NCBI GenBank assembly: GCA_043228905.1
Contig: JBHGNT010000008.1
Location: 10,106,001-10,170,000 of the forward strand
Reading direction: 5' to 3'
Length of the DNA: 64,000 nucleotides
Source: Azolla caroliniana
Lineage: Eukaryota; Plantae; Polypodiophyta
Each line of letters begins with the position of its first letter. Position 1 is the stretch's first letter. The notes under the pieces are model-generated. The model worked only from the letters and a program-made list of their open reading frames with translations, had not been told where the DNA came from and did not search any database. Shown piece by piece: positions 32,037-55,123 of this stretch. Made by a program: the position numbers and the translations under genes.

Positions 32037-32973
32037 AAGTCATAAAATTTTGGTAATGATATTTGAATTGTAATATTGATGGGGCATGATGTTCCTAATT
32101 TGATTCATGTACATTTTATTGCCCATATATGCCCGGGTTCATATATCAAAATAAACTTTTGGGAATGATATTTGAATTGTTGATGGGGCATGATGTTCCT
32201 AATTTGATTGATGTGCATTTTATTGCTCGTTACAAAGCATTAGTAATTGCAAATGTATGTAAGTATATCCTTGCACTCATGCTTGTTGAGAATGTTGTAA
32301 ATGAAGTTTCGTCATGGGCTAATAACTCTACGAGAAATCATCTAAAATTATGCAATTGGTTGGTCACACGTCATTGCAAATTTACATTATTTGATGGTTT
32401 TTAGGTTGACAATGAAAGATTAGTGAATTTAATGCATGTTGTTAAATGACTTGAATTAATTTTTGTGGTTTGTTAAAAGCCACGTCTCTCATCTGCATGA
32501 AGTATATATAAAGGCCCATGCATGCATCATTATCATGCAAAAGTTAGTGAAGTGAGGGCTATATATATAAAGGCACCCTTAGTCATTTAAAAAGTATGAC
32601 CACCAAGAGTTGTAGGCTTGTGAGATTTGAGAGAATTAGAGAGTTGGGAAACACCATTTTAGAGAATTCTTGTGAGAGAATTGTGAGGTTATTCTCTTGG
32701 GTGTTGGGTTTAATTAGAGAATAATTTCTCTAATTGTTGTAAACTCTCTGTTACATTTTCTTATAGTGGAATCACTCTCCTTTCCGTGGACGTAGGCTAA
32801 GTTAGCCGAACCACGTAAATACTCGTGCCATTTATTTCTCTGCTCCTATATTATCATATTATTGTTTTCTATTTAATCTAATGTACTATTTGATCTGAGT
32901 GTCATCCTAACAAATTGGTATCACAACCCTAGTTGTTAGTACATTAGTTTTGGTATTTTCTTGTTAACTCAAG

Positions 32974-33759
32974 ATGTCGACAACAAAATTTGATGTCGAG
33001 AAGTTCGATCGAAAAATCAACTTCTCTCTTTGGCAAGTAAGGATGCACGCGATCCTTGTGCAGAACGGAGCTCAGAAGGCTTTAGATGTAAGGCCCGACG
33101 GTATGATGGACACCAGGTGGGAGGATATAGACGAGAAGGCCCGCTCAGCGATTCAACTGTCTTTGGCAAATGAAGTTTTGCGGGAGGTAATCTCTGAGAA
33201 GACATCGAAGGCACTATGGGAAAATTTGGAGTCTCTCTATCTGAAAAAGACTCTGACGAACAAGCTTTATAAGAAATAGTGCTTCTATTCACTACGGATG
33301 AGTGAAGGTACATCTCTCAGTTTTCATATTGATGAGTTTGAATCTATTCTCATGGATTTGCAAAATCTCGATGTTACTATTGATGATGAAGATAAGGCAT
33401 TATTGTTGTTGTGTTCATTGCCCCATTCATATAGACATTTTAGAGAAACTATGTTGTATGGGAAAAATACTATTTCTCTTAAAGATGTTAAATTTTCTTT
33501 GGAAACTAAAGAAAAGATTGATCATGATATCACTGGACAAACTAGTGATAGTCAGGCACAGGGTTTATATGTAAGGGGTAGATCTAAACAAAAAGGGAAC
33601 AATAGAGATAGGCCTAAATCTAGAACTAAATCCAGAAGTAGATATGTTGTGTGTTGGCACTGTAAGGAACCAGGCCACGTTCGCAAGAATTGTGATAAGT
33701 TGCAGAGAAAAAAGAATACTCCACAAGATAAAAATGAGGATGCGGGTAAAGCTATTGTT
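32974..33759 (+). pseudogene. gag: Copia C gag
   Basis: MSTTKFDVEKFD..NFSLWQVRM, LLLLCSLP.SY, CWHCKEPGHVRKNC; one internal stop. Confidence 0.92.
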
Positions 33760-34369
33760 CCCGGGGACTCCACTATATATAAGAGCATTGTATCACGTGC
33801 ATTCATGACATCATTTATAAACCCCTTATATGTATGGTTTTTACTATTTTAGTGACCCTTTTGTAGAAAAAAGATTAATAAAAATACCCCTTACTACCAA
33901 TATATTATTTGATAACCACCCATTTTAAATACCCTTCCATATAAAATATATATGCACACATAGTTTCGAATCCTAGAAGGGATCAATGACCAACTTTACA
34001 ATTGATGACTCGCAAAATTATGAATGAGCTTTTAAACATCATATGCAATTCCTAGAAATGCTTCATCAAGTGCCACATAGATTGAAAACACAATGTGTAA
34101 AGTAGAAAGTAATGTACACACAATTAGGAAACATTACCCAAAAATACTAGAGGTATAACATATATAAGCCACATATAAGTTTTTCTTTTAGCTTATTGAG
34201 ACATATGAAGAATATCGAGTGATAAAAAACAGTGTAATTTACAATAAAACAATCTTGAACTTGAGATATATATCTCAAAGAGCACACATGGAACAATCCA
34301 AAATGCATATCAATAATGAAATTACTAACAAATTAACATTATGTTTGGTTTCATGGATAGACTCATATG

Positions 34370-37300
34370 TGTAGAAAGTAGCGTGCGGAAGCAAGTATAA
34401 AGAGAGAACAGAAGGAAGAACACTCAGGTTTAATGGAGAGCTTGAGCTTACGCAGTATACGCGGGAGAGACCGAGAGAGTAAGAGAGAAGACACCAAAAA
34501 GAGAATATATTCAAGAAAGACAAAAAACAATACATATATGTGTTCAATGAACACTTTGTACAAGTCCTAGAAGGACTAACCGAAGTATTGACAGTACTTC
34601 AATGCTCATTAAGAGCTCCTACACTAACTCCCAAATATATTCCTCATGGAATATCTTTCCTAACGGCCTAACTGATCCGTCCCAACCGATTCGGTCCTCG
34701 GCTTCTTCAGCCGATCCGGCCGATATTGAGCTTGTCTCTCAACACTCCCCCTCAAGCTCAACTTGAGGCTCTTCGGGATCTTCACAGCTCCGGTTCCTCC
34801 TGGCTTCACGCCTCGCTCGCGCTCCTCGACCTGTTCGACTCCGTGCGATTCGACCCTTCCGGTTGGCTTGTCTGCTCATGTGGCCCTTATCAGCTCTTCT
34901 GCCGTTGCGGTGTCGACACTTCTTCTGCTGCCTTTTCTTCCGCTTGGGCCTCGGTTGATTCAACGTGTCTGAATCAAACATCCGAACCGACTCGGCTACC
35001 TCCGATCGGTTTTCGCTCTCGTCCGAGTTGGCTATCTCCAACTGGTCTTCGGTCTTCTCGCCCTCGATGGCGTCATCTCCCCCATGCGTGGTTGGCTTCG
35101 GCTCTCTCCTTCGGCTGCTCCCCTTCTGTCCGCTTCTGGACTTTTCCGCGGGTTCGCCCTCGGCTTCTTCAGCCGATCCGAAGTCGAACTCGACAACTGA
35201 CAGCCTTGCTTGGTCGTTCGGGACTGTTCTCCCCCTCAAGTTTGGCACGTCGAGGTGACGCAATCCGAGCGCACCTGAGAATTGCCGCAACTTGTCCAGA
35301 CCAAGAGGCTTTGTGAAGATGTCGGCACGTACTAAAGTTCGACTTCACTGGAAAGGACACGCTCACGGACGAAATGGTAGTGCACCTCAATGTACTTGGT
35401 CCGTGCGTGGAAAACGGGGCTCTTCGCAAGCTGGATGTTGCTGAGGTTGTCGCAGTAGATCATCGTCGGATCTGACACCTCTGCTTGCAGGTCCTTAAGT
35501 AGCCGCTTCAACCATATGGCTTCGCATGTCGCGACAGCCGCTCCTCAGTACTCAGCTTCGGTGCTCGACAGTGCAACTGTCGGCTACTTCTTACTACTCC
35601 ACGCGATCGCGACACTCCCGAGGGAGAACGCGTATCCGGACGTGGATCGGCGATCAGCGGCGTTGCTAGCCCAATCAGCATCGGTGTAGCTGACTAACTG
35701 CGCGGCTGCACCGGTCCGATATAGCAGTCCGCGGTCCTTAGTGCCACTTACGTACCGCAATACGCGTTGCGCACATTGAAGGTGCTCCTTGGTAGGTCGC
35801 ACCATGAACTGACTGATCACCCCGACCGGATAACTGAGGTCGGGTCGGGTGATTGTCAAGTATATGAGGCTTCCGACAATTTGTCGGAACCTCGTCGGGT
35901 CGCATACCTCTCCCGTATCGGGACGAAGCTTGATGGTTCTATCCAGAGGAGTCGAGACGGACTTACAGTCGGCCATCTCGAGTTTGAAGAGCATACCCAG
36001 CACGTAATGACGTTGGCTGATCAATATGCCTTCGGGGGTATGGATCACTTCGATCCCGAGGAAGTCATGAAGGTCCCCCAGATCCTTCATGTCGAACGAT
36101 GCCGCAAACTGGAGCTTCACGCGGTCGATTTCACCTAGGTCGGTGCCGGTGATGACCAAGTCATCGACATATAGTAGAATACTAACCGGTCCGAGTCGAC
36201 CTTTCTGGATGAACAGGGAAGAGTCTGATTTTGATGTGACGAAGCCCATCCGACGCAGTTGTTGCGTGATCTTCGCGTTCCAGGCACGCGGGGCTTGCTT
36301 CAGTCCGTAAAGGGACTTCTTCAGTCGGCATACTGTTGAGGAGTTCGTTCTGGAGTGAAATTCGGGGGGCTGTACCATGTACACCTGTTCCTCAAGGTCA
36401 CCTTGCAAGAACGCATTGTTTACATCTATCTGATGTAAGTGCCACCCCTTCACCGCAGCTACTGCGAGCAAAACACGGACGGTCGTCATTTTCGCGACCG
36501 GCGCAAATGTCTCATCGTAGTCGATGCCGTGTTTCTGCGCGTAGCCCTTTGCCACTAGCAGAGCCTTGTACCGGTTGACTGAGCCATCGGTGTTGTACTT
36601 GACTTTGTACACCCACCTACACCCGATCGGTTTTACCCCTCTTGGTGCGTCAACCAGGTCCCAGGTCTCGTTCTCCGCCAATGCGTGCATCTCTTCCTCC
36701 ATCGCGGCACGCCAAGTCGCGTCTTTAGATGCTTCTGTGTAGCTCTCCGGCTCACGCACTTCCGCTACACGGGTCATGTACGCATAATGATGCGCCATGT
36801 ACTCGTTGTATCCAAACCGCAAAACAGGATCCTTCTGTTGGGTAGATCAGCGTAATCTCGCATTAGCCGATGTCGAGGCCTTCTCGATCGACACAGACTT
36901 CACTTTTAAAGACCCGTCACCGGTTCCCTCGGAGTCGGACTCGCGTCGGTCTGACTCGTTCCTATCCGTGCCAGAATCCGACACCTTCTTCTTCCCTTTC
37001 TCTTTGCGTGTAAGCCGTCTCCTCAGCTTCCTGCGCGGGGAATGCACGACCGAGTCTCCACTACTCGCCAGCTCTTTATCAGATTGGTCATACCAACTCA
37101 GTCGTCCAATCGATCCACTTAACCGGAGTGAAATCGAACTCTCTTCGCGGATCTTGATTTCAGGCTCATCCGGAGGCATCTCGGCCTCGCTGACCTCATC
37201 GTCAGAGCTTGGATTGGAGTTGGGGTTCGTAGTCGGGGGCAGGTACCAGGACGCGGACTCGTCAAACACAACGTTGCGGCTGCCACGCGCTTGTTTGGTG

Positions 37301-39947
37301 CGAAGGTTATAGCACTTATAACCCTTCTACTTGTCCGAGTAACCGACCAAGATGCATTTCTCGGCCTTTGCGTCCAACTTCCTCCTTTTCTCCTTCGGTA
37401 TATGCACATACGCAATGCTACCGAACACCCTCAAGTGTCGCAAGTTCGGCTTCGTTCCGAAATATAGCTCGTGTGCCGACACTTTGTCTCCGATCCGGTT
37501 CTGGATGTATACCGCGGTCCTTACCGCCTCGGCCCAGTAGAACTTGGGCAAGCTCTTCTCCTCCATCATTGCCCGTGCCGCTTCCACAACTGACTGATTC
37601 TTCCTCTCGGCCACACCGTTTTGCTCCGGCGTGTATCTACAACTGAATTCACGCCGAATTCCCATTTGTTGTAGATAACCGTTGAATTGACCGGAGAAGT
37701 ACTCTTTCCCGCCATCCGACCGCAGGCACTTGATCTTTCGTCCCGTTTCCGTTTCCACGAACCCTTTGAGGTCCTGAAAGCAGTCGAAGACTTCGTTCTT
37801 CCTCTCAATGAGGTAGATCCACGTGTGCCGTGTGTGGTCGTCGATGAAGGAGACGAAATATCGGCTCCCACCAAGACTAACGTTTTGTGCCAGCCCCCAT
37901 ACATCGGAGTGTATAATGTCGAGCTTGTTCCGTCTCCGGTTTCGCTCGTTGGGGAAAGGAAGTCGGTGTTGCTTCCCGAGCTGGCAGGCTTCACAAATTT
38001 GTGCCTTTCGGCCACTAAATTTGGGCAATCCGAACACTACCTGTTTCGATTGCAGATCTTGAAGCCGCTGTGGTTGACGTGGCCTATCCGCTTGTGCCAC
38101 AAGTCGATGTCCGACTCAGATTTTATTCCCTTCGCGAACATTGCGGTGCCGCCGTCAGTGGAGTCGAGGATGAACATCCTCCCGTCTCTGCACCCTTGCG
38201 CAATCACACAGCCTTCTTCCTCAATGAAGCACCCGAGGTGTGTAAACCGAACCTCCATCCCTTGGTCGACGATCTGTCCGACCGAGACCAAGTTTTTCGT
38301 GATTGTCGGAACGTGCAACACGTTCATGAGTTTCCCTTTCTGCCCGACATGGCTAAGGGGAACTTCTCCGACATTCGCGATCAGATGCGGAGTGTTGTCT
38401 CCAGTTGCGACTACTCCAGGTTGTATCAGTTTTTCAAGGTACGAGAACCACTCCTTATGGCTCGTCCTGTGGTTTGACGCGCCGGAGTCTACGTACCACA
38501 CCTCGTCCGATCTCGGGGTGCTCTGTTTCATTGAGTTAGCTTTGTGTCTCGTCACGAAGGCAGACCCTTCTCCGGCTCTCCCGGAGTCTTCGGCGTAGTG
38601 CGATTGCTGCCGATTTCCCTTGTCAGTATGTCTAGAGACGTTTCCGGAACCGGTTCTCTCCGAATCGGTGCGCTTCTTCCAGCACTCACTTTCCCTGTGG
38701 CCTTTCTTGCTACAGTACCGGCACTCCGCGATGGCCTTCCCTTGCCGGTTTTCATCGCTTCGACTCCCCCTGTTTCCGGAGGGTCCGGAGTTGATGTCGG
38801 CATCAGTTTGGTGCCTTCTTCCTTGATCTCGTTGGCCGCCTCCATTGCGCGCCGAGTCGCCTCGTCCTCCACGTCCACGGGGCCTATCTCCCTTTGTGTA
38901 CAACATTCTGCTGTCGGTGTGCGTGCTTGTAGACGCACCCGCGTGGTTCTCCTCTACCAGGAGCATTGACTGTAAGTCAAAAAAGGACGGCGTATTCTCC
39001 CGGGTACACATAGCCGTTCGGAACGCTCCGAACTTCGACGCCAAACCTCCCAGACAGATATGGATCATCTCGCTCTCCTCGATGTTCACCTCTATGGAGG
39101 CGAGGGAGTCGCAAATATCCTTGATCTTCGAGGTATAGTCCGCCACCGACAAGTCGCGTTGTCGTAGGTTGCTCAACTCTTGTCGGAGCTTAAGCTTCCT
39201 AGTTGTGGTGCTCGCGGCGAAAATCTTCTTCAGATTTTCCCACGCACCCTTCGGCGTCTTTGCATCCCGAACATAGCTCAATAGCTGTTCGCCTACACAC
39301 GACGCGAAACAATATAATACCCTGCTTGCTGATTGCTCCCATGACGGGAAGTCTCTGTGTGTCGATTCGAGTGCCGCGTCATTAGCTCCTTCGATATAAC
39401 TCCAGTAGCCGTGCCCGAGCAGGTACTGGTGCATCTTGTAGGACCAAGACGCGTAGTTGCTTCTGTCAAGCTTCTCTATTGGAAGCGAGCTCGCCATGCC
39501 TCTATCCATCGTTCTTCTTCGTCAAGCTGTGTTGGCTGCAGAGAGGTTCTCAACCCTCGCGCTCTGATACCATGTAGAAAGTAGTGTGCAGAAGCAAGTA
39601 TAAAGACAAAACAGAAGGAAGAACACTCAGGTTTAATGGAGAGCTTGAGCTTACGCAGTATACACGGGAGAGACCGAGAGAGTAAGAGAGAAGACACCAA
39701 AAAGAGAATATATTCAAGAAAGACAAAAAACAATACATATATGTGTTCAATGAACACTTTGTACAAGTCCAAGAAGGATTGACCGAAGTATTGACAGTAC
39801 TTCAATGCTCATTAAGAGCTCCTACACTAACTCCCAAATATATTCCTCACGGAATATCTTTCCTAACGGCCTAACCGATCGGTCCCAACCGATCCGGTCC
39901 TCGGCTTCTTCAGCCGATCCGGTCGATGTTGAGCTTGTCTCTCAACA
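34370..39947 (-). mobile_element. Copia D, full length (5578 bp)
   Basis: 375-bp LTRs at 34370-34744 and 39573-39947 (14 mismatches); TSD ATATG; PBS-Met at 39572-39561; gag (CRYCSKKGHRESEC), PR (VDSGAS), IN, RT, RH with a few breaks. Confidence 0.97.
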
Positions 39948-40159
39948 ATATGAAACCATAACTTTACTTTTTCTCAAACATATTGATCAAACAAATGACA
40001 ACCTATTTTATATTTACATTTGAAATGTAAGACATCATCTATTCACATATTCTTACCCAAATCAAAATAAAATAAAATAAATCATTTTGTTATTGCAATG
40101 TCTACTTAAAAAACTTATTACAATAAATGTTACTCTCATAAAGACCAACTATATAAAAA

Positions 40160-41437
40160 GAAAACCCTAAGAAGTTGCCTTTCTCCCAAATCTCTTTGTA
40201 GTGCTTAATGATGGTCCATCTAAAATTTTAGAAACAAAGTTGTGTAATCTTGGTCCACCACACATTTTAATCATGACAAAAATTGCCTTAGATGTGTCTT
40301 TAAATCATAATTGTCCATGTGGCTTTCGAGTAAGCTTTTGTGCAACATCTGTCAAGAAATCCCATAATGCATTCTTTCCACCAAATTTTCCAGCTCAATG
40401 AGCCTCAATAATGTTATTACAAAATCTTCGAACATCCTTCCATTCCACACTCTCAACGGATGCTTCCTTGAGAGTCATTACCTTTACTGAAAGCATTGCA
40501 ACTTTGCAAGCTAGCCACCATATTTGTGTATGAGCACAACGGATGGTTTGCTTAGAACTTGACATTTCCTTTCTTGTCTCTTCTTGACTAAGATAATCTA
40601 GTCACCTACCCTCCCCAGTTCCTCGATTACCTCTTTTGACTTTAGCCCTATACTCCCTATACACCCTCATATGGAAATCATTACATTTTGGAATTTCATT
40701 ACATTTTTCACATGTAAGATTATGAAAGGGTTCTTCAATCTTCGATACTCTTTTTCAATCAAAATGGCCAAAACATCCATCAACACTCTTGCATCTCATA
40801 CATCACAACAACTTTGGTGTAAGGCTCAGAGAACCATAAGGTGCCATGATTTTGATCGATGAGAAATTATTTACATGTATTTCTTCATCATTTATCAATA
40901 TGCTATTATGCCAATATCCCCAACACAATAGTGACAAACCAAAATAATGTGGAGTAAAGAACTCACATTCTTGACTAGACGAAAGTCGCAAGGTTAAAAC
41001 AAGAAATTTGCTCAAGGTTTGTTGATTTGAAGGTAAAGCTTCTTGTTTTCGTGGACGACCCAGAAATCCACTCATTATTGGCATGTCGGACCATCTCCAT
41101 CGACGTTAGATGGGTCTTGGATTCTATGTGTTGAAAAAAAATTGTTGACAAATCACTCCATGGAGGGCATAATGGTAACCAAGATCCATCAATCTTGCAT
41201 TTTACCTTCACCATTGCCTTATCTTTATATCCATGAAGTGTTGCCTTTATAAATCAAATTCTGCATCTATAAAAAAATAGTTTTCACATATGAATAATGT
41301 GCTAATATATGTGAAAACTGGTTTTTTAGGTAACCAAGTTGAAATAATTGAATAATCTGCTAATAATGTTTTAGATAGGCCTCGTCATCTATTTTAGACA
41401 AGTTTATTGATTCATCTTGTTGGCTTAACCCCCTTCG
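40160..41437 (-). pseudogene. Putative transposase-like gene, downstream segment
   Basis: Decayed frames: KVKCKIDG..LCPP...QHIESKTH; LCWGYW; TCEKCNEIP..NDFHMRVYRE; GKFGGKNALWDFLTDVAQ...IKMCGGPRLHNFVSKILDGPSLSTTKR. No catalytic domain visible. Confidence 0.6.
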
Positions 41438-41454
41438 AGCATAATATCGTTTTT

Positions 41455-44400
41455 TTTTTCCATAAAACATATGCTCCATTAGTATTAATAAAAAGCTCGA
41501 AGGCAGTATACAAATAGTACATAATATTGTTTCATCTCCACCAATATATCTGAACTGATTCTAGCATTTGTAAAAACTGTTGGGAAAAAAAACAGCCATA
41601 AAACACAGCATTGATTCCAGTTATCTATTGCAGAAAACAAAATTTCGAGATCTTAGAACAGAACTCCATAGAAAACTTATATTTCACATGATATTCCATG
41701 TCCTCCGTCTTTCCAATCATATGTGTCAGGTGTGGAGCTGTAAGAAGATTCACCATCCCAAAAGAAACAGTTGCAAACAGATCTGAACTGATTATAGCAT
41801 TTGTAAAAACTGTTGGGGAGAAAAAAAAAACAGACCATGAAAATGAAATGTACTATACTAATCTCCACCTCTCACCCCATTTGCTTTGATCCCCACAACT
41901 TATTCACTCTCCCTTCATGGTGTGCTTCGGCCCCCTCACCATCATCACTCCTAAAAACCAAATTGCTTCATTCAATCCACCTCCACCATCTCGCGGAATG
42001 CCACCAATGTCCTGTGGAATTAACAACAAAATAAGTAAAAAAATACCTCATCTCCTCATGAGCTGCTTCGATCCCCCCTACCATCATCACTCCTAAAACA
42101 GACACATTGCTTCCTTTAGTCCACATCCACCCACCATCTCGCCGAATACCACCAATGTCCTGTGCAATGAATCAACAAAAATGAGAAATTGTTCCTCATC
42201 CCCTCATGATTTGCTTCGTTCCCCCGCACCATCGTCACTCCTAAAAACAGAGAAATTGCTTCAATCAAACCACATCCACCATCTCGCCGAATACCACCTC
42301 TGACCTATACAAATAACAACAAAAACAAGTGAATAATGGTTCCTCATCCCCTCATGATTTGCTTTTGTCCCCCCCACCATCATCACTCCTAAAAACAAAC
42401 AAATTGCTTCAATCAATCCACATCCACCATCTCGCCGAGTACCGCCAATATCCTGTGCAATTAACAACAAAATAAGTGAACAATGATTCCTCTCCCCTCC
42501 GGATCTGCTTCAGCCCTCGCACCAACACCACTCATCCTCACACCATGACAAAGTTGCTTCAAATCCCACTGCCATCATCCCGCAACCTATGAGAACCATA
42601 ATATCTGTCTTAAATCAGCCCATATCTGGGGTATCTTGCTTCCCCTATTCCATCTCACCGATTAACGCGGCCCTGTAATCACAACAAAAAATGAGGGAAA
42701 ACCATTTCTCGCCTTCTCATAATAATCTGCTTCAGCCCCGACTCCAACATCACTCATCCTAACCACAAAAAACAGAAAAACGGCTTCTTCATGTCCCCAT
42801 CTACCATCTCGCTATCTCCGATTCGACAATCATGTTACACTAACAACCAACAAACGAGTAGAAAACAAACAGAAATCCTCACCTTCTCCTAGTAATCTTC
42901 GACAACCCCCACCAACATCAGTCATCCTAATCACAAAACAACTTAAACCTATTTCAACCTGTCCACATCCACCATGTCAATGTCTCTGATTATCACACGA
43001 AATCTGCCTCATACCACTAAAATCTTCTTATACTAGTCTGATTCAGCATCCAGAATATCATCCCATTTCCTCATATCTTCTTCTAGCATATGTATATCTT
43101 ACCTACATTAAAATAAGCTTCCTACATGCCGCCACCGTCTCCTCCCTGTTATCTCATGTTGTTCGCCATAAGAATGGTACTGGTGGTGGGAACAACCAAC
43201 GAGGTGGCACATAATTCCACCTAACCTCCGTGCTTGCATCTAACATTATAGGAATAGCTGACCAAACTCGTCGTAATCTCTTTCTTTTTCGAATGGCTGT
43301 GTTTCCATAGCCTTTATACCTGTCATACTCACCTTTAACTGAATGTACTAATAAATTCCAAAAAGACTTTACTTGATCCACAACGTGAATGTCTTCATCA
43401 TTGTATAACTTGGAGCACCTAGCTTTCCAAAGAACCCATAGAGACAACGAAGAGACAATCTGCCAAACATAACTCCGCGAGAAGAACTTGACTCCCTGCA
43501 AGGAACTTGAAGTAGAATATACCTGAAAACTTCTTACATATAAAGACAATGAAGAATGATTATAATGATAAAAAGCCCTTTGTTGATCCAACATTCCCCA
43601 AAAGACTGCACCCCACGTAAAAATAGCAGACCTATACTTACGACCTAGAAGCCTAAGAATTCGACACCAAAAACTTTTTGCGGAAACACATTCCCAAAAT
43701 GCATTATGCAATGTCTAATCCACAAACCCACACATAATACATGACCGATTACTCACCGATCCCCTCAATAAATGGCCTATTGGCAATGCATAATGAATCA
43801 TCAACCACCGAAAATGCAATATCTTATTCATGCATTTAATAGACCAAAACTGTTTCCAAAACATAACCATTTGAGTAGATGAAACATTACCTTCCTCCCA
43901 ATACTTTTTTCCAGCAGGTATCGGCTCGGTCTGCCTCAACATAAAATTCCTGCCAAACGCTACTGAATATTTGAAAAAAGGAAGGAGCTTAGTCGAAGAG
44001 TCAGATATAGATAATTTCCAACCATAATCCGTTGGATCCCACTGCAGGTCATGAATAGGTTTAGAGTCTAACACCGAAATATGAGATGAAAAATTAACTA
44101 TTAGTGGACTAGGATCAATATATATATTTTTATCTAATCTAGCAATTACTCGCACTGGCAATTGCTTCGCAGCCAACATGATTTGAGACTCCTCATCCAC
44201 TAGTATCAACCTACCATTGTCCAACACTTCATAAAAATAAATGCTACCATTTTGATCATATAACCGAGCTCCTATAAGTATATTGAGTGTCAAGAACATA
44301 CCGTACCAACTCTGAAAATGATCGAATTGCAATGTAGGCACTGTGACCTGATACACCCTGGACAATTGTGATAACATGATCTTAGCCCCTCTTAAGTTAG

Positions 44401-46939
44401 ATAACCTATTACTTTGCTCCAACGTAGAGGACTGCATAAACCTTATCCAATCCGCAACCGTACGAGCTGGTCCACTATCCATTGTAGCCCATGATAACCT
44501 AGGGCGTAAACCCAAAACACATGCAGCTTCATTAGTAAATAAAGGATTCCATATCAATGGTTGACGCATAAATTGATGATAGCTTTTCGGTGGCAAGAAA
44601 ACAAGCACTTGCCGAAGAGTTTCCCATGCCCGAAAAATTCCATTGAAGAAGCGCAATGATCCATCATTGGACTTAGGTAGCTGGAAATCTGCATTGAAGA
44701 ACCATTTAAGACTATCCTTCCATTGACCACCTACCGAAGGCTTGACCTTATATAGATGTTGCATCCATAGTTTTTTCCATAACTCTTGTCCTGGCAATAA
44801 ACTCCTAACAACATGTTTAGTAAGTAAAGCTTTGCTTTGCATAAATGGATCAATCAAACCTAAACCATCTTTTTGTTTAGGTTGTATCAGAATAGACCAA
44901 GCTACCTTTGCTACAGGATTGACTGACCTATTGTTCCCCCAAATAAAATTCCGTACTAAACGTTGAACTTTCAACATTATTGACCTAGAAAACAACCATG
45001 TAGATGCTATATACAAAATCGAGGACAACAACACCGCATTAGCTACAACTACACGTCCTGCTAAAGATAATTTTTCTTTATTCCAATATACTAATTTATT
45101 TCTTAATCTTAACAATAAGGGTGCAATCATATCTTTTGACTTTAATCCCACACCCACTCGACAACCTAAATACCTAATGGACTAACCTTGTGGTATCCAT
45201 GTGAATCCTAAAGAGGGTACATTAACTAGCGGATCTCCCTAAGCGACCCAACAACCTGATGACTTATCCCAATTTATCAATGCACCCGATGCATCTGAGA
45301 AATCATCCACGGCCTTTTGCACATGAAACAAATTACCATGTGAGGCCTGAACATATAAAGTTGTATCATCAGCGAATTCACAATCCACATTTGCGTTTGC
45401 TACTGGTAGTGCTAAACCTTTAATATTTACATATGGAGAATTTAAATGTACAGAGAATGCTTTGGTACTAACAAAAACAGGAAAGGAGCAAGTGGACATC
45501 CCTGGCATACAGATCTTGAAATAAAAAAATGCCTACCAATGTCCCCTGCAAATAATAGAGAACTACTTGCATTACGATATAATGCTGAAACTCCTCGTAT
45601 CCAATTACTTGGAAAACCCATCCTAACGAGTGTTCCCTCCATAAAATCCCAATCCACTCTGTCGTAAGCTTTTTCAAAATCAAGAAATAACACCGCCAAA
45701 TCTTGTTTCTGCGCTTCAGCGATGGTCACCATTTCCCAAAAGAGAATAATATTATCAAAAATACTTCACTCTTGCAAAAAACATGTCTGGGTATCATGAA
45801 TCAACTCCGAAAGATAAGGTTGTAACCGTCTAGCTATCGTTTTTGCTAATATCTTATAAATAACATTCAACAAGGTAATTGGTCTCCACTGGCTAAGCTC
45901 TTCTAACTGTCCACTTGTTTTAGGAATCATATAGATTAAACCCTCCTTCCATTCTTGGGGCATATTTCCAGAATCTAAAATTTGTTGATAGGCCTTAGTC
46001 AGCCCATCACCTATCAAATCCCAATACTGGATATACCATTGAACTCCCAACCCATCCACACCAGGACAAACATCCTTTGCAAGGGCTTTTACTGCTTTAA
46101 AAACCTCTTGAGTACTTAATGGTTGTAAAAGACAACGTAAAAGATTTCTAGAAACCCTATTCTGAACCCTAGACCATATAATGTCCCTCTTAACCATATC
46201 ATCCTTAGAAAATGGTCTAGCTTTTAACAAAGCTTCATAATAATCAGAGGCTATTTGTCGCATCTGGCTAGGATCCGTGGTATAAGAGCCATCAAGACAT
46301 CTTAATCTAGATATCCTCGCTGATGACTTATGATGATTATGCACTACAAAGAACAACTTGTTGACTTTATCTCCCGATTCTGCCCATGTGGATGATGTAT
46401 TGTGATAGTTAAAATCAACAGAAATCTTTTGTAAGTCCAATATTTGATTCCCTACTTGAACCACTCGAGCACTTATATAACTTGAATGTGGTCTTCTCTC
46501 TTGCAAATGTTGCAGGGATTCCAATCCCCTACGCAGCCTACCTATTTTAGTTAAAGATGCATAAAATACTTGTTTAGCCTTCTTGTAAAAAATTGTTGTG
46601 TTTCACTAATAGCCTTGTGAACACTAGATAATGCATAATCATAGGAGTAGTCATACTTATTCCAAATATTATGCATCGTAGGGGAACAATCTGGGCTAAG
46701 AAACACATGATTCGGAATTCTAAACCTTGAGTTCTTATACTGCTCCTGTAAGACTATAACTAACTGAAGCGGTGCATGATCAGAAAAGGAAAATGAAGGT
46801 ATGATTCCAATGGAACCTCCTTTGTCCCACAAAAACTTATCAGCATAAAATCTATCTAACCTAGACAAATTTGCATGTGATTGTCTTCTATCTGATCTTG
46901 AATACTCTAAGGAATCTTGTATCCTTGTAAAAGAAGACA
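41455..46939 (-). mobile_element. 5'-truncated L1-clade LINE with 1.7-kb 3' region and poly(A)
   Basis: EN end (SRLDRFY, SDHAP), RT (WRPITLLN, LDFEKAYD, QGCPLAP, FADD), zf-RVT-like C-terminus ending at 43154; poly(A) at 41459-41450; 17-bp TSD AGCATAATATCGTTTTT at 41438-41454 and 46940-46956. Confidence 0.93.
41860..43000. repeat. Tandem array, unit about 145 bp, about 7 diverging copies, inside the LINE 3' region
   Basis: CCATCATCACTCCTAAAA...TTGCTTC...CCACCATCTCGC recurs at about 41939, 42081, 42229, 42376, 42521, 42746 and 42912. Confidence 0.88.
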
Positions 46940-47577
46940 AGCATAATATCGTTTTTCATGACTTTGACTCTTAATATGACTTCTAAAAAAATTATTAAGA
47001 CGCACATTTGCTACTTTTGCTTCCATAGAACCAGCACCATAGGGTTCTCCACCCTCATTGCACCATAATCTTATGACTGTTTTTCGATAAAAATCCTCAA
47101 CCTTCAACTCAAATTTATAATCTCGAGGAATTGTAACATTACTTAATTTTACACGTATCCTATTACATTCTATCATCCATTACCTAAAACATCTCTAGGA
47201 ATCTTATCCTTGATTGTTTCAATTGGAGATGTAACTTTAAAATTGTCCCCGGCTTGACCCAACAATGAACCCTCAACATTAGTGCATGATTCTTTTGAAG
47301 AGACTTTTTGTTTATCAATACTAGGCTTGATATAGACTTTATTTTCTTTTAAACGCCATTTGTCTTCTTGTTTCCCATTCAAAATATTATTTTTTCTGTA
47401 CACAAAGGAAAATGGTTCATAAAATATACCGTCCTCAATTATTTTGACTCGGATCTTTGCATATGTAAGAGTTCCTCTCACACTTACAATGCCCAAAGGT
47501 TTATCTTCATCATCCCTCTCATGTTCAAACACTTCAATAATAGATTCTTCATCCAATCTACACATAGAATGGCCCAC
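46940..47577 (-). pseudogene. Putative transposase-like gene, 5' segment
   Basis: ORFs 47577-47173 and 47176 onward (IRLWCNEG...NNFFRSHIKSQSH); joins in frame across the L1 TSD: SHEKRYYA|RRGLSQQ. Confidence 0.6.
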
Positions 47578-47761
47578 CTATCACTTTTCATATAACCATA
47601 CATCATATATATGTGTGTATGTGTGCATTGTGAATGTGGTATTCATGTGTGATTTGTGTGTATATATGTTCCATACATCATATATGTTTGTATATGCATG
47701 TGTGTTGTTTGTTATGTTTGTGTGTGTGTATGTATGTTCCATACATCGTATATGTTTGTAT

Positions 47762-47930
47762 CATAGTTCTAGCCATACGTCCCATTCGTGTCATACTCAA
47801 ACGCCAATATTCGTATCATACTCATACGTGAAAAGGCTCCAAGTATGATTGAAATCCATACGCGGTACATAGATATATTATATATACATATGGTGTATAT
47901 GGTGTACATAGTGTGTGTGTGTGTGTGAGG

Positions 47931-47967
<37 letters not shown>

Positions 47968-48346
47968 TGTGTGGTCTAGAGAGAGAAGCCCTGTTTTGCA
48001 TGTGTGAGGAGACAGTGATTGAGTGTATATCTAGACTCTAGAGAGAGAGAGAGAGAGGAGCTATGGGTTTTGTCTGTGTGAGGGAGTATGTAATATGTAT
48101 ATTAGATATCTAGATTTTGTAGAGAGAGAAAATCTGTCAGTTCTCGTGTGAGAGAGAGAGTGTGTGTGTGTATGTGTGTCAGATATCACTTCTATTCACA
48201 AAATATTATGAATATCAAAAATAAAAAAAACCCAAAAAAAGTCAAAAAAAAAAAAAGCCAAACGAATATCGCGTATCATACGCGTACGTTTGCAAACGTT
48301 CGCGTACGTCCAGTAAATTGGACGTACGCGAATATTAGGAACTATG
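47762..48346. mobile_element. Non-autonomous hAT-like MITE (585 bp)
   Basis: TIR CATAGTTC...GAACTATG; perfect 8-bp TSD GTTTGTAT; subterminal CGTATCATAC/CGCGTACG motifs. Confidence 0.88.
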
Positions 48347-48564
48347 GTTTGTATGTGGTATGCATGTGTGTTGTGTGTTATGTGTTATGTTTGTGTGTGT
48401 GTGTGTGTTTGCGCGCGCGCGCGCGCGTGTGTGTGTGTGTGTATAGGTATGTGTGTTATGTATGTACATATTGTATTGTATTTTATTTAATTGCATTTAT
48501 TGTATGTATAGCATGTGTGATGTGTGTTATGTTTGTGTGTGTGTGTGTGTATTCTATTGTATTC

Positions 48565-48603
<39 letters not shown>

Positions 48604-49001
48604 TCTATTGTATTCCATGTGTGTGTGTGTGTGTGTGTGTGTGTTTATGTATGTATTCTATTGTATTCCATGTGAATTTATGTGTTGGTTTATGTACGTG
48701 TGCATTATGTATGTATGATGTTTGTACTTATGAGTACTTGTAAAATATTTGTAGAGTTGTTGTGGCAGCCCCGAGAAAGAATAATGGTGAGCAAAAGCGG
48801 CATTACAAGGCGAATGGCGGCGGCGACGACAGCAAAACGAGAACAGGGGCGGCAAAACGAGAATAGAGGCGGCAAAACAAGACTAAAGGCGACAAAACGA
48901 GGACAGAAACAACAAGCGGAGAAGAGGCGACCGACAACAATGGGAGAGAAGAGGAGGTAGAGCAAAGGAGGAGGTGGCAAAAATCTAAATTAAAAAAAAC
49001 T

Positions 49002-49880
49002 TGAATGTTTGAATCTTATGTTTAGTATGTATGTATGTATGTATGTATGTGCACGGAATGTATGCATGTATGAATGAATGAATATATATATATGTAATGT
49101 ATGCATAAAATATGTATGCTTGCATGAATGAATGAATATATGAATGTACATATGTGTATATATGTAATATGTAATGTATGCATATTTGTATGTGTATGCA
49201 TATATGTGTGTTTGGATGTTTGTTTGTAATATGTATGTATGTATGTGTATGTATAATATATATTGTTCGTAAGCATGAGACTACGTTTAGTAACGATGCA
49301 TTCCCTTTTATATCTCTTTATCTCTCTTGTTCTCTCTTGTAGTTCATATGCCCGGGACTACACATGGTAGTCGGGATTTTGTATTTCATTTTTATTCATG
49401 TTGTATCTCCAACCCTACAGTCTATCGCATAGCACGGTGTTATATTTGTCACCAGCCTATGTACTCACCCCTTATAAAAATCTTTATATTCTAAGCCCTA
49501 CCCCTCCCTAACATTCTCCTATTTTCAGCCCTACCCCTCCCCTACTTTCTCCTATTTCTAGCCCTACCCCCCTTACTTTCTCTTATTTTTAGCAGTACCC
49601 CTTACCCATTTTTTCCTATTCTCACTCATACCCCTCTCCCAATTTTTTTTATTTTTTCTTTAGAATGTTTTCACTTATCACTTTTATAATTTAACTTAAA
49701 CATTCATACCCCTCATATATACATTTTACATACACATACATACGTATTACAAACAAACATCCACACACATATATACACACACATACAAATATACATACAT
49801 TACATATTACACATATACACATATGTACATTCATATATTCATTCATTCATGTTTATTCATGCAAACGTACATATTTTATG

Positions 49881-49925
<45 letters not shown>

Positions 49926-49999
49926 ATTCATTCATACATGCATACATTATGTGCACATACATACATACATTCATATTAAACATAACATTCAAACATTCA
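49002..49999. repeat. Inverted repeat (arms about 49002-49257 and 49724-49999) around a spacer with a minisatellite of about 32 bp (49494-49650)
   Basis: Arms align as reverse complements, including non-microsatellite words (TGAATGTTTGAAT, GTGCAC, GCATAAAATATGTA, GGATGTTTGTTTGTAAT). Confidence 0.85.
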
Positions 50000-50308
50000 T
50001 GTACGAATGTACATATGTGTATGCATATATGCATATGTCATGTATGTCATGTATGTGTATGTATGTCCATGTACGAATGTACATATGTGTATGCATATAT
50101 GCATATGCCATGTCTGTAATGTATGTGTATGCATATATGCATATGTAAATCTACATGATTCAATGTATGTGGATGTTTGATTGTAATATGTGCATAATAT
50201 CTATGTATATATGTGTATGTATATGTAGCAATGTATAAATTAATATATTTATGTCCATGTACAAATGTACATATATGTATGCATGTATCCATATGTAATG
50301 TATGTATG

Positions 50309-50339
<31 letters not shown>

Positions 50340-50973
50340 GTATGCATATATCCATATGTCAATGTACATGATTCAATGTATATGAATGTGTGATTGTAAT
50401 ATATGCATATGCAATGTATGTACATATGTGTATATATGGAATATGTAATGTATGTATGTTTGTATGTGTAACAGTGTGTGCATATATGCATACATGAGTG
50501 TGTGGACGTTTGTTCGTAATATATATGTATATATGTATATATGTATGTATGTATGTGTATGTAACGTATTTATGTGTATGGATGTATGTTTGTAAAACTT
50601 ATAAAATTGTAGGCATATGTATGTATATATATATGGTGATATGTGGAATATGTATGTATGTATGTGTATGCATATATGTATGTATATGTCAATATACATG
50701 ATTCAATGAGTATGAATGTGTTTGTAATATGTGCATAATATGTATGTATATATCCAATGTATGTATGTGTATGTATATGTGTGTATGTGTATGTGGTCAT
50801 ATGTATGTAAATGTATGAATGTATGTATGCATATATATGTAATGTATTTATGTCTGTATATTTTTGGGATATTTTCATGTTTAGTATGTATATGGCTTGT
50901 ATATGGATGTACGTTTGTAATATGTACGTAACATGCATGTATATATCCAATGTATGTGTAAGTATACATATAC

Positions 50974-51018
<45 letters not shown>

Positions 51019-51700
51019 ATATGTGTATATGTATATATGTAAGTATTGTGGTTTGTATGGTCCAGTATAATCTATATATATGGTGATATGTGGAATATGT
51101 ATTTACATATGTAATATATCCATGTATGTATCTATATATGTATATATGTAATTTATCTATGTGTAAATTTGTATATTGTGTAATAGTTATGGATTATATT
51201 CTATGTAATACCTAATTTATTTATGTGTGTGTGCACGTGTATATTTATGTAAAATATACAACTTGTTTGTAAGTATGAAGATTTGTATACATATAATATG
51301 TAATCTTTGGTATTAATATGTATGTGTATGTGTATATATATAATATACAATTTATGTTTTTGTGTTTTGTATGTATATATGCATTTGTGTATGTATATAT
51401 GTAATATGTAATTTTTATGTATGTATGTATTATGTATATATGTATGTCAATATATAAGGCCGATTCTAATATGTATGTAGTATGTAATGCATGTATGTAT
51501 GTGTATGTACATATTTACATATGATAATATATATTTGTACATATATTTATGTTTAGTCAGTATGCATGTATAAATGGGTGTAATGTATGTATATACATAT
51601 TCATGGATGTAATGTTTGAATGTAGGTATATATGCATGCATGCATGTATATGTATGTATGTATGTACGTATATATGCTACTCCAAATTTGAGTATTGTTT
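50000..51700. repeat. Cryptic (TA/TG/TATG)n low-complexity tract
   Basis: Almost entirely ATGT/ATAT/GTGT words, with local duplications. Confidence 0.9.
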
Positions 51701-51822
51701 GTAAAATATATTCTTTACTATCTCATTGAAATATCTAATATTTCATGGGGTTATGTAATTTTTTTTTCCAGCATAATTGATAATACCCTTATGTAAATAT
51801 ATTTTCAAATCTTTATTAATAC

Positions 51823-51856
<34 letters not shown>

Positions 51857-51957
51857 ATATATATATATTCTGTATCTCATTGATTAATTAAAACCCCTTT
51901 TGATGAACTCACGTGCTAACATACAAGTTTTGATAGTGAAGCCCCCGGGCTATTGTT

Positions 51958-54900
51958 GCTGAAGTGGGAGGCAATGTTGATGTGCTCCTTGTGACGGAAA
52001 AGTCAATCAAGCTGAATAATGAGTGGATTATGGATACTGGTTGTTCTTATCATATGTGTTCCAATTAGGACTGGTTTTAATCATACGAGTCTATTGATGG
52101 AGGAGTAGTTTTGATAGGGAATAATGCTCCATGCAAGACTATTGGAATAGGAACAATACGGATCCGGATGGCTGATGGGATTGTCAGAACATTGACTGAT
52201 GTGAGGCATGTTCTTGATCTGAAGAAGAATCTCATCTCATTGGGCACCCTTGACGCCAACGGGTGCAAGTTCTCAGCTGAAGGTGGAGTATTAAAAGTTA
52301 GCAAAGGTGCGTTGGTTGTGATGAAGGCTAGAAAAGTAGGAAGCCTGTACGTATTACATGGCTCGACAGTGATGGCTTCTGTAGCAGTTTCTTCATCGTC
52401 TATGTCAGATTCTAATGTTACGAAGTTATGGCACATGAGGCTCGGGCATATGAGCGAAAAAGGTTTAACCTTATTGAGCAAACGAGGACTACTTTGTGGC
52501 CAAAGTATGGGAAAGATAGATTTTTGTGAGCACTGTGTATTTGGAAAGCAGAAGAGACTCAACTTTGGCATTGGAATCCATAAGACTAGAGGTTCTTTGG
52601 ATTATATTCACTCTTATTTGTGGGGACCAACACCAATTCCATCAAAAGGAGGAGCTCAATATCTTTTGACTTTTATTGATGATTTTTCAAGAAAAGTTTG
52701 GGTCTATTTTCTTAAACACAAAAGTTATGTGTTTGATACTTTTAAGAAGTGGAAAATTCTGATCGAGAAGCAAACGGGAAAGCTGAATAGAAGACTTCAA
52801 ACTGATAATGGTTTGGAATTTTGCGGAGGAGATTTTAACAGGTTTTGCGAGGCTGAAGGAATTTCCAGACATCGCACAGTAGTTAAAACACCGCAGCAAA
52901 ATGGCGTAGCTGAGCGCATGAACAGAACTCTTTTGGAAAGGGCTCGTTGTATGCTTTCCAATGTTGGGTTGTCCAAACACTTTTGGGCTGAAGTAGTTTC
53001 CACGACATGTTTCCTAGTGAATTGTTCACCGTCAACGACAATTGAGTTTAAAACTCCTGAAGAGGTATGGTCTGGTAAACCTGCTAATTATTCAAATTTG
53101 AGAATATTTGGATGTCCTGCTTATATGCATGTTGGTGAAGGAAAATTGGAGCCTCGAGCTAGAAAATGTATTTTTCATGGTTATGCTTCTGGGGTGAAAG
53201 GATATAGGTTGTGGTGTCCTAATCCTAAGTCACCTAAATTCGTAATTAGTAGAGATGTTACTTTTGATGAATCTGCTCTACTAAATCCTTGAAAGGAGCC
53301 TGTGTTTTCTTCTGATACATATAAGACAGGAAGTACATCAAAGCAGGTGGAGATTGAAGTTCCAAGTTCATCAGTGATGGCTGAAACACCTGCTCCTGAA
53401 TCTATAGAAGAGGAGCCTGATGTCGTAGAAGAAGCACCTCCTGAGGAAGAACGAAGTATTGCAAGAGATAGACCAAGAAGAGAAATTAGACCACCACACA
53501 GATATGTTGATATTGTTGCATATGCTTTATCAGTTGGAGAAGAAACAAATTTTATTGGCGAGCCAACTTCTTACTCTGAAGCCGTTTCTTCTGTTGATTC
53601 CACCAAGTGGTTGTTTTCTATGCAAGAAGAAATTGAGTCTCTTTATAAAAACAAAACTTGGGTACTTGTGAAGCCACCAGCTAGAAAAAGGATTGTTGGT
53701 TATAAATGGATCTTCAAAATAAAGGTAGGAATTCCTAGAGTAGAGAAAGCAAGGTACAAGGCACGGTTAGTAGCTAAAGGCTACAGTTAGGTACCAGGTG
53801 TTGATTTTAATGATATTTTCTCACCTGTTGTGAAACATAGTTCTATTTGTGTCTTGCTTGCATTAGTTGCTATGCATGATTTGGAGTTAGAACAACTTGA
53901 TGTAAAAACCGCATTTTTGCATGGTGAACTTCAAGAAGACATTTACATGCAACAACCAGAAGGGTTTGTTGTTGAAGGAAAAGAAGATCATGTTTGCCTA
54001 TTGAAGAAATTGTTATACGGTTTAAAACATTCTTCGAGATAGTGGTACAAGTGATTTGATTCCTTTATGGTTGGCAGTGGATACTCAAGAAGCAGTTATG
54101 ACAATTGTGTCTATTTCAGGAAGACTCATGATGGTTCATTTATCTATCTGCTTCTTTATGTTGATGACATGTTGATTGCAGCTAAAAATATGTCGGATAT
54201 TGAAGAATTAAAGAAGCAGTTGAACAGAGTGTTCGAGATGAAGGATCTTGGTGCAGCAAAAAGGATCCTTGGCATGAAAATCGAAAGAGATCGTATTGGT
54301 GGAAAGTTGTATTTAACTCAAAAGAGTTATATTGAGAAAGTGTTGGAGAGGTTTGGTATGAAAAATGCTAAACCAGTATCGACTCCGTTTGCAACGCATT
54401 TCAAGTTATCAGCTTCTTTATCACCAAAGTCAGATAATGAAAAGAGATGCATGGCAAGAGTTCCCTACTCCAGTGCAGTTGGTAGCATGATGTATGCTAT
54501 GGTTTGTACGCGTCCAGATATTCCACATGCTGTGAGTGTGGTCAGCAAATACATGGCTTGTCCTGGAAAATCACACTGGAATGTAGTGAAATGGATTCTA
54601 AGATATTTGCGTGGGACTTCAAACGCTTATCTGGAGTTTGGCAAGAGTAGTAGTTCTCTAGTTGGCTATGTTGACTGTGACTATGCTGGTGATCTTGATA
54701 AAAGAAGATCACTAATAGGGTATGTATTCACTCTGGGTGGAAGTGCAATTAGCTGGAAAGCTTCGTTGCAGCCCGTGGTTGCGTTATCAACGACAGAGGC
54801 AGAGTACATTGCAGTGACAGAGGTGAATTAAAGAAGGGATATGGTTAAGAGGCTTACTTGGGGAGCTCAGGTCTTGGTCAGACAAGATCGACATTTTATG

Positions 54901-55123
54901 TGATAGTCAAAGTGCCATTCATTTGACTAAAGATCAGATGTTCCATGAAAGAACTAAGCACATCGATATCAAGTATCACTTTGTTCATGATGTTATTTCG
55001 TGGGGTGATATCTTAGTGAAAAAGATTTCAAGTTATGAAAATCCCGTAGATATGTTGACGAAGCCTCTTCCAAGAATCAAGTTCAAGCATTGCTTGAATT
55101 TGATTGGTGTTGCCAATAATTGA
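51958..55123 (+). pseudogene. pol: Copia C pol (PR-IN-RT-RH)
   Basis: [69 protein letters not shown]; a few stops and a frameshift. Confidence 0.95.

Follow-up and report, generated by a model that had tools for sequence, protein, structure and literature searches.

An 18.2-kb insertion in a copia retrotransposon

The window analyzed here is a stretch of 64,000 nucleotides from Azolla caroliniana (Polypodiophyta; assembly GCA_043228905.1, contig JBHGNT010000008.1, positions 10,106,001 to 10,170,000 of the forward strand), and coordinates given without a contig name refer to positions in this window. Positions 33760-51949 form a single insertion, 18.2 kb in total, within the gag-pol frame of a copia retrotransposon. 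This insertion, less two retroelements nested in it, is very probably a member of a multi-copy cut-and-paste transposon family that encodes a P-element-type DDE transposase and constitutes a divergent lineage of the P superfamily in land plants. An earlier note, made from the window alone, described an 18.2-kb DNA transposon of a poorly described cut-and-paste family and named the P superfamily only as a possibility, which is now favored by the predicted fold, the catalytic signature and the language-model features of the transposase.

The insertion is bounded by a perfect 8-bp target-site duplication (TSD), CTATTGTT, located at 33752-33759 and 51950-51957, such that the left junction reads ...GTAAAG CTATTGTT followed by CCCGGGGACTCCACTAT... 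and the right junction reads ...ATAGTGAAGCCCCCGGG followed by CTATTGTT GCTGAAG.... Terminal inverted repeats (TIRs) of 17 bp occupy 33760-33776 on the plus strand (CCCGGGGACTCCACTAT, the 3′-end in the orientation of the gene) and 51933-51949, which reads CCCGGGGGCTTCACTAT on the minus strand. The two repeats are identical at 15 of 17 positions, and a search of the window allowing up to three mismatches found no match to this terminus beyond the two ends. Farther inside, an inner inverted block with the consensus CACGTG.(A/G)TTCAT (CACGTG at offset 35-40 and TTCAT at offset 43-47) is present at an equal offset from both ends, as CACGTGCATTCAT on the plus strand at 33794-33806 (offset 35-47) and as CACGTGAGTTCAT on the minus strand at 51903-51915; it is conserved in every family copy compared and is a candidate transposase-binding site. 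The duplication, the imperfect TIRs and the paired CACGTG and TTCAT elements had all been reported in the earlier note, as had the clustering of the motif ACCC(C)TT near both ends in one orientation, and each was confirmed.

In the terminal 200 bp of both ends, ACCC(C)TT occurs seven times on the plus strand and not once on the minus strand, where approximately 0.17 occurrences would be expected at the window-wide rate (Poisson P ~8e-10, for a motif picked post hoc from the data). Four of the seven motifs are located at 33821-33937 (starts at 33821, 33855, 33886 and 33931) and are conserved in two further copies of the element, L001 and L003, and the other three are located at 51785-51899 (starts at 51785, 51821 and 51893), the last of which is conserved in the related contigs L052 and L053. 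Both clusters lie on one chromosomal strand, so that they are oppositely oriented relative to each terminus; because this also holds for the ACCCCTT adjacent to the inner block, the two ends of the element are asymmetric.

The two copia flanks were joined in silico with a single copy of the duplication, solely as a test of the claim that precise removal of the insertion restores the host frame. The joined flanks read through from the gag zinc knuckle to the protease DTG (...NEDAGKAIVAEVGGNVDVLLV...WIMDTGCSYH), as had been claimed, and the restored host copia still has two stops further along. A 475-bp direct repeat with 93.5% identity at 32439-32912 and 55179-55638 may represent the two long terminal repeats (LTRs) of the host copia. 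In that case, the copia element nested inside the insertion, with ~97% identical LTRs, would be the younger of the two.

Nested retroelements and the remnant of the transposase gene

Whereas the single insertion proposed earlier is upheld, 18.2 kb is not its native size, because ~11 kb of it is secondary sequence contributed by a copia element (5.6 kb) and an L1 element (5.5 kb), each with its own duplication. The copia LTR retrotransposon (34370-39947, minus strand), which is foreign to the element, has LTRs of 375 bp at 34370-34744 and 39573-39947, is flanked by the duplication ATATG, encodes gag, integrase and RVT_2 domains, and is missing from five other family copies, namely L001, L003, L013, L014 and L015. 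Its GC content is 53-56%, against a background of ~35%, and the closest named relatives of its reverse transcriptase (RT), which are 45-53% identical, are all from seed plants, nearly all of them angiosperms. The equally foreign, 5′-truncated L1 (41450-46951, minus strand) matches RVT_1 and zf-RVT, ends in a T11 poly(A) tail (41450-41460), is flanked by a 12-bp duplication (AGCATAATATCG; 41438-41449 and 46940-46951) and is missing from L001, L003 and L015. The 3′ untranslated region of this L1 is unusually long (~1.7 kb; 41450-43153) and includes a tandem array of four 148-bp units (41983-42539) with a strong C bias on the plus strand.

Without these inserts the element measures ~7.1 kb and consists of 0.8 kb of non-coding sequence on the left, a decayed gene on the minus strand and a TG/TA-rich, microsatellite-like body of ~4.1 kb (47762-51870), which extends from the gene to the right end and is 70-77% similar to the body of L052 and L053. 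Within this body, an inverted repeat of 89 nt (49123-49211 and 49763-49851; 96% complementary), which could represent a palindromic duplication or a foldback, is surrounded by several weaker inverted repeats.

The internal decayed gene noticed earlier is indeed present, and it is the remnant of a transposase gene divided by the L1. Its first part (46952-47761, minus strand), which includes family-conserved upstream sequence, is 96% identical to L015:21-853 and encodes the N-terminal region with a CxxC...H...H finger; its second part (40173-41449, minus strand) carries stops and frameshifts and encodes a second zinc finger and the sequence up to approximately residue 351 of the 1122-amino-acid (aa) frame found in intact copies. 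The element's own sequence downstream of the gene then follows on the minus strand (39948-40172; 91-94% identical to L001:4312-4540). The junction between the two, at 40173-40176, shows a 4-bp microhomology (AACT) and marks the loss of 2.54 kb, corresponding to L001:1772-4311, which holds the entire catalytic core and the C-terminus. Since residues from ~352 onward are gone, the window copy is unable to move by itself, and from its sequence it is a dead, non-autonomous deletion derivative.

The remnant was queried piecewise, exon by exon. A Pfam scan of every stop-free piece gave no match, even at E 10, and a full phmmer search with a 134-aa N-terminal piece returned only 10 matches, which were weak or fragmentary. 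A 100-aa piece matched an 85% identical protein, the contig of which is L001.

Related copies and recurrence of the ends

L001 is uninterrupted at both sites of nested insertion and retains the 2.54 kb absent from the window. L001, L003 and L015 are mutually 99.1-99.4% identical, and L013 and L014 are 95-98% identical to L003; the 1122-aa frame is intact in L003 and L015 and nearly so in L014, in which a frame of 1082 aa was called. Unrelated flanking sequence adjoins the terminus ...GGAGTCC(C/T)C(G/A)GG in L001, L013, L014 and L015, and L003 lacks the last three bases of the terminus. The L015 copy occupies a site within the RT region of a member of the copia family that also hosts the window copy (L015:5517-6663, corresponding to 53856-55003 of the window). 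The copy at L013:8336 lies at the homologous site in the gag-protease linker of a different copia-like element (compare 33759 of the window), with the flanks CACTATAG at L013 and AACAATAG in the window; this coincidence may be accidental or may point to a preferred target.

When metagenome contigs were scanned with the 17-bp terminus, 93 loci were obtained, ~60 of which were set aside as chance matches in GC-rich, probably bacterial contigs. The scan identified ~25 further junctions, which differ in their flanks and come without exception from a single series of plant-associated assemblies. More than 25 junctions have a left terminus beginning with CCCGGGG. The junctions from the scan fall into two types. 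Type A junctions have a window-like end and are accompanied by a transposase gene, whereas type B junctions have only ~190 bp of the left end in common (82-88% identity) and no transposase gene. Two type B contigs carry non-autonomous relatives in which both ends occur in the window arrangement on either side of a microsatellite-like body without a transposase (L052:270-6764 and L053:54-5577), and the right end is ~90% identical to 51870-51949 of the window. The presence of both ends together on L052 and L053 indicates that they are a recurrent pair.

Raw reads from one plant species (run X21) were also examined over 33300-34400 of the window. Thirty-one reads carry unlike flanks that start exactly before 33760, the loose parts of these reads agree mutually at only 39%, and read depth is ~3-4 times greater over the terminal ~130 bp than inside the window element. 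The heterogeneous flanks and the raised terminal depth demonstrate that the family is multi-copy and that its terminus is base-exact.

Length of the target-site duplication

The window alone permits a duplication of 8 bp, or of 9 bp when a shared G is included. This ambiguity is resolved by two related families. In the first (L007), the transposase of which is 48% identical over 72% of the query, a 6827-bp element with the termini CCCGGGGGGGGCAC...GTGCCCCCCCCGAG has a perfect duplication of 8 bp, GCCACACG, on either side of CCCGGGGGGGG...CCCCCCCCGAG. In the second, with a 40% identical transposase, two copies of 7.74 kb (L004:9146-16887 and L005:9147-16886; termini CTCGGGGGGG...CCCCCCCGAG) are 99.86% identical and lie in inverted orientation on a single contig of 1.26 Mb, separated by ~52 kb. 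Their flanks are swapped, one copy having GCTTTGAG and TGTAAAGG and the other TGTAAAGG and GCTTTGAG, a pattern that appears to be the signature of two insertions with 8-bp duplications followed by an inversion through recombination between the inverted copies. Galileo and BuT5 have left a similar signature at inversion breakpoints in Drosophila (PMC2775673, PMC3698922). No element boundaries were found around a Calypogeia copy (L006).

The right terminus of L053 likewise finishes ...CCCCCGGG and is then followed by an unrelated flank. Together with the duplications of the related families and the constant CCCGGGG start of the left terminus, this end favors 8 bp over 9 bp, in agreement with the reading preferred in the earlier note. 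Termini of the form C(C/T)CGGGG are a trait of the wider group.

The transposase of intact copies

A search with the 1122-aa frame, designated P0003, recovered 89 relatives with E-values of 2e-41 or lower. The named relatives are from the fern Adiantum nelumboides (45-57% identity) and the liverworts Calypogeia fissa and Riccia sorocarpa (~31-50% identity), and no seed-plant protein was present among the named matches. Precomputed Pfam annotations show no domain in the transposase part of any of the 89 relatives. Intact relatives comprise ~1100-1500 residues and are organized as zinc fingers, a helix-turn-helix region, an RNase H fold with an insertion domain and a C-terminal beta-barrel; the N-terminal fingers are C2H2/BED-like (CxxC...H...H). 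The L003 frame homologous to the first part of the remnant can be aligned with residues 182-322 of a relative of 1520 aa, and the existence of relatives of 1400-1530 residues shows that this upstream CxxC...H...H frame is part of the same protein.

An alignment of 37 members revealed the invariant blocks EDET (388-391), S-GDSR-R (508-515), E746, S750 and G753, in addition to the nearly invariant residues Q555, D556, H559, K562, K563 and N566. The catalytic signature D389, D511, D556xxH559 and E746 (P0003 numbering) is invariant or nearly so in the 37 sequences. Its spacing in the family is D(121-122)D(45-51)DxxH(181-195)E, except that the interval from DxxH to E is shorter in two members (146 and 153), which are likely truncated.

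Predicted fold and assignment to the P superfamily

An AlphaFold model of the 1122-aa frame has a pLDDT of 78.7 overall and above 90 across most of the core (approximately residues 350-750). The top Foldseek match of this model is 6P5A, the Drosophila P-element transposase (E 1.8e-10; TM 0.70 normalized by the target). With VIA-align, residues 291-781 of the model are superimposed on residues 140-566 of the 6P5A chain (Z 26.9, rmsd 4.2, 402 of 442 chain residues), and the next-best matches are Transib (Z 12.4), RAG1 (Z up to 10.7) and Hermes (Z 9.1). The predicted fold is thus P-like, at a sequence identity to 6P5A of only 14-15%. In the model, D389 is located on beta-1, D511 after beta-4 and DxxH after beta-5, and a helical domain of 181-195 residues precedes E746; this insertion domain of ~190 residues is predicted to sit where the P element has its GTP-binding domain. 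The corresponding residues of the P element are D230, D303, D339xxH and E531, with an insertion domain at 339-528, and its spacing is 192 from DxxH to E and 73 from the first to the second D (PMC8230255).

Among the traits of the P superfamily, the 8-bp duplication (7-8 bp are required), the D..D..[C/D]xxH..E signature and, in the predicted model, a fold resembling 6P5A, with its helix-turn-helix, split RNase H and helical insertion domain, were all found. In a language-model comparison, annotations with PF21787, PF21788, PF21789 or PF12017 are found in the nearest named clusters of the Atlas, with scores of ~0.95. The resemblance to the P superfamily (the Drosophila P element, THAP9/Pdre of vertebrates, 1360 and Galileo) also extends to short TIRs accompanied by an inner inverted block, to a D, D, DxxH, E RNase H core with a helical insertion domain of ~190 residues predicted at the equivalent position, and to the occurrence of internally deleted, non-autonomous derivatives; inversion between inverted copies, as in L004/L005, is shared with Galileo and BuT5 (PMC3698922, PMC2775673). 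The differences are that the P-element transposase has 751 residues compared with ~1100-1500 here, that ~48 extra residues separate the first two catalytic aspartates here, and that the present family has C2H2/BED-like fingers without a Pfam-detectable THAP domain, an extra C-terminal beta-barrel, termini starting with CCCGGGG, several kb of microsatellite-like sequence separating the gene from one end, and land-plant hosts. The second-best structural matches, Transib and RAG1, likewise combine an RNase H fold with a helical insertion domain, but at Z 10-12 the match is far below that of the P element. Transib elements make 5-bp duplications and have ends resembling recombination signal sequences.

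Several results weigh against assignment to the P superfamily. The Pfam models PF21787, PF21788, PF21789 and PF12017 gave no match in 36 of the 37 members, and the one exception matched PF21787 at E 2.6e-4, under the curated cut-off; apart from this single weak P-family match, Pfam found nothing in the 37 members, and the first member scanned had no match even at E 10. A THAP domain was not matched by Pfam in any of the 37 members, the N-terminal fold not having been searched separately, and the profile of the 37 members found no relative among the sequences of the Protein Data Bank (PDB). Since both the Pfam P models and the PDB profile fail, the link to P is based mainly on predicted structure. 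The ends of P, 1360 and Galileo are not known to resemble the CCCGGGG termini. An entry for the family may already exist in repeat libraries such as Repbase or Dfam. A search for the ends elsewhere, as suggested in the earlier note, recovered them both singly and paired, but the flanks of the paired contigs L052 and L053 show no matching duplication, so that within the exact family the 8-bp duplication is known from the window copy only. These two contigs are probably chimeric short-read assemblies of repeats, which support the pairing of the ends and not the length of the duplication.

Alternative classifications

In one alternative, the family would form a superfamily of its own, sister to P rather than part of it and defined by CCCGGGG termini, zinc fingers other than THAP, a D-D spacing of 121 residues and a C-terminal beta-barrel. 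The failure of the Pfam P models in 36 of 37 members and of any THAP match, the D-to-D spacing of 121-122 as against 73 in the P element (PMC8230255), the extra C-terminal domain and the 14-15% identity to 6P5A are what such a rank would predict. We consider it distinctly unlikely, because the alignment at Z 26.9 covers 402 residues including the insertion domain and is far above those with other transposase folds, and because the DxxH-to-E spacing, the 8-bp duplication and the language-model neighbors favor P; the rank of superfamily is, moreover, partly a convention.

A divergent element of the hAT superfamily, to which Ac and Hermes belong, would share with the family the 8-bp duplication, the zinc-finger N-terminus (CxxC...H...H, hAT fingers often being of the BED type), an insertion domain in the RNase H fold and the DxxH motif, which is also present in hAT transposases (PMC9587614). 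The match to Hermes, however, is much weaker (Z 9.1, rmsd 7.5) than that to the P element (Z 26.9), and neither the C-terminal hAT dimerization domain nor any hAT Pfam family was matched, which makes this classification very improbable. The termini of hAT elements are typically of the (C/T)A type and differ from those of the window element. A MULE with a 9-bp duplication (GCTATTGTT), formally possible in that a G both precedes the left duplication and closes the element, can hardly be correct given the exact 8-bp duplications of the related families (MULE/MuDR duplications measure 9-11 bp), the L053 right end ...CCCCCGGG before a different flank, the lack of any MULE or SWIM Pfam match and the P-like fold.

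CACTA was rejected, and Zisupton/KDZ and Merlin were rejected in the absence of any Pfam match of their kind in the 37 members. Novosib elements also make 8-bp duplications. The earlier view that the element is none of hAT, CACTA or MULE is thus borne out, and its proposed route, namely to find a fuller copy and predict the structure of its protein, led to the intact 1122-aa frame and to the P element as the best structural match. The family is of the cut-and-paste type, as the earlier note held, and no description of it was found in the literature searched; the note fitted the element to no standard plant superfamily, but by its P-like transposase it does fit a catalogued superfamily.

The C-terminal domain

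Residues 972-1086 of the whole model align to bromo-adjacent homology (BAH) domains, including those of EBS, SHL, DNMT1 (BAH1) and AIPP3, with Z 7.5-8.6. When folded alone, the C-terminal domain reached a pLDDT of 83.9, and BAH, chromo-barrel, Tudor and PWWP readers dominate the lists of its matches, at Z up to 7.0 and Foldseek E of 0.007 or higher. Pfam gave no BAH match for this domain, and a shape search of the Atlas added nothing. The possibility that the predicted beta-barrel is a BAH/chromo-like reader domain is hence a tentative lead rather than a finding. It would be a step further, and rather unlikely in our estimation, that the family is a plant-specific P-type lineage in which THAP was replaced by other zinc fingers and a chromatin-reader-like barrel (BAH/chromo-barrel) was gained that steers integration. 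The chromodomains of chromovirus integrases provide a parallel for chromatin-guided integration, and to our knowledge no domain of the chromatin-reader type is known in a cut-and-paste transposase.

Proposed history and mechanism

The arrangement of the window copy suggests a history in three steps. First, the element inserted into the gag-pol region of the host copia, generating the 8-bp duplication. Second, 2.54 kb including the catalytic core and the C-terminus was lost, probably through interrupted gap repair, from which a microhomology such as the 4 bp at the junction would be expected. Third, the copia element and the L1 inserted into the element.

During transposition, the transposase of intact copies may recognize the 17-bp termini (5′-CCCGGGG) and the inner block CACGTG.(A/G)TTCAT at offset 35-47, pair the two ends, excise the element and, like the transposase of P elements, integrate it with a stagger of 8 bp. 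The P element uses a GTP cofactor bound by the insertion domain and cleaves its ends with a 17-nt stagger. DNA binding, any GTP dependence and the geometry of cleavage in the present family may be analogous. The 3′-terminal base of both strands of the element is G, and in the P element GTP contacts the terminal G; P elements also have 8-bp duplications, TIRs and internal transposase-binding sites at different spacings at each end (PMC7776569). In the window element, the ACCC(C)TT motifs, with their opposite orientation relative to each terminus, may distinguish the two ends. The corresponding G-rich motifs of the L004 family are in inverted orientation, which indicates that the asymmetry is specific to the family of the window element.

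Occurrence in land plants

P-type transposons are known from animals, and automatic labels point to some fungi. Full-text literature searches retrieved no account linking P-like elements with land plants, and a census of fern repeats lists 17 superfamilies of DNA transposons, among which P is not included (PMC6890710). The named hosts of the relatives identified here are ferns and liverworts only. A recently active, multi-copy lineage in these plants would, if true, widen the host range of the P superfamily and would offer a second, very divergent system in which to address which peculiarities of P are ancestral, namely GTP as a cofactor, cleavage with a 17-nt stagger and the asymmetry of the ends. 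Sequences left unclassified by repeat pipelines in fern and bryophyte genomes would likewise be explained, and the possible chromatin-reader domain provides a testable idea on the choice of integration sites.

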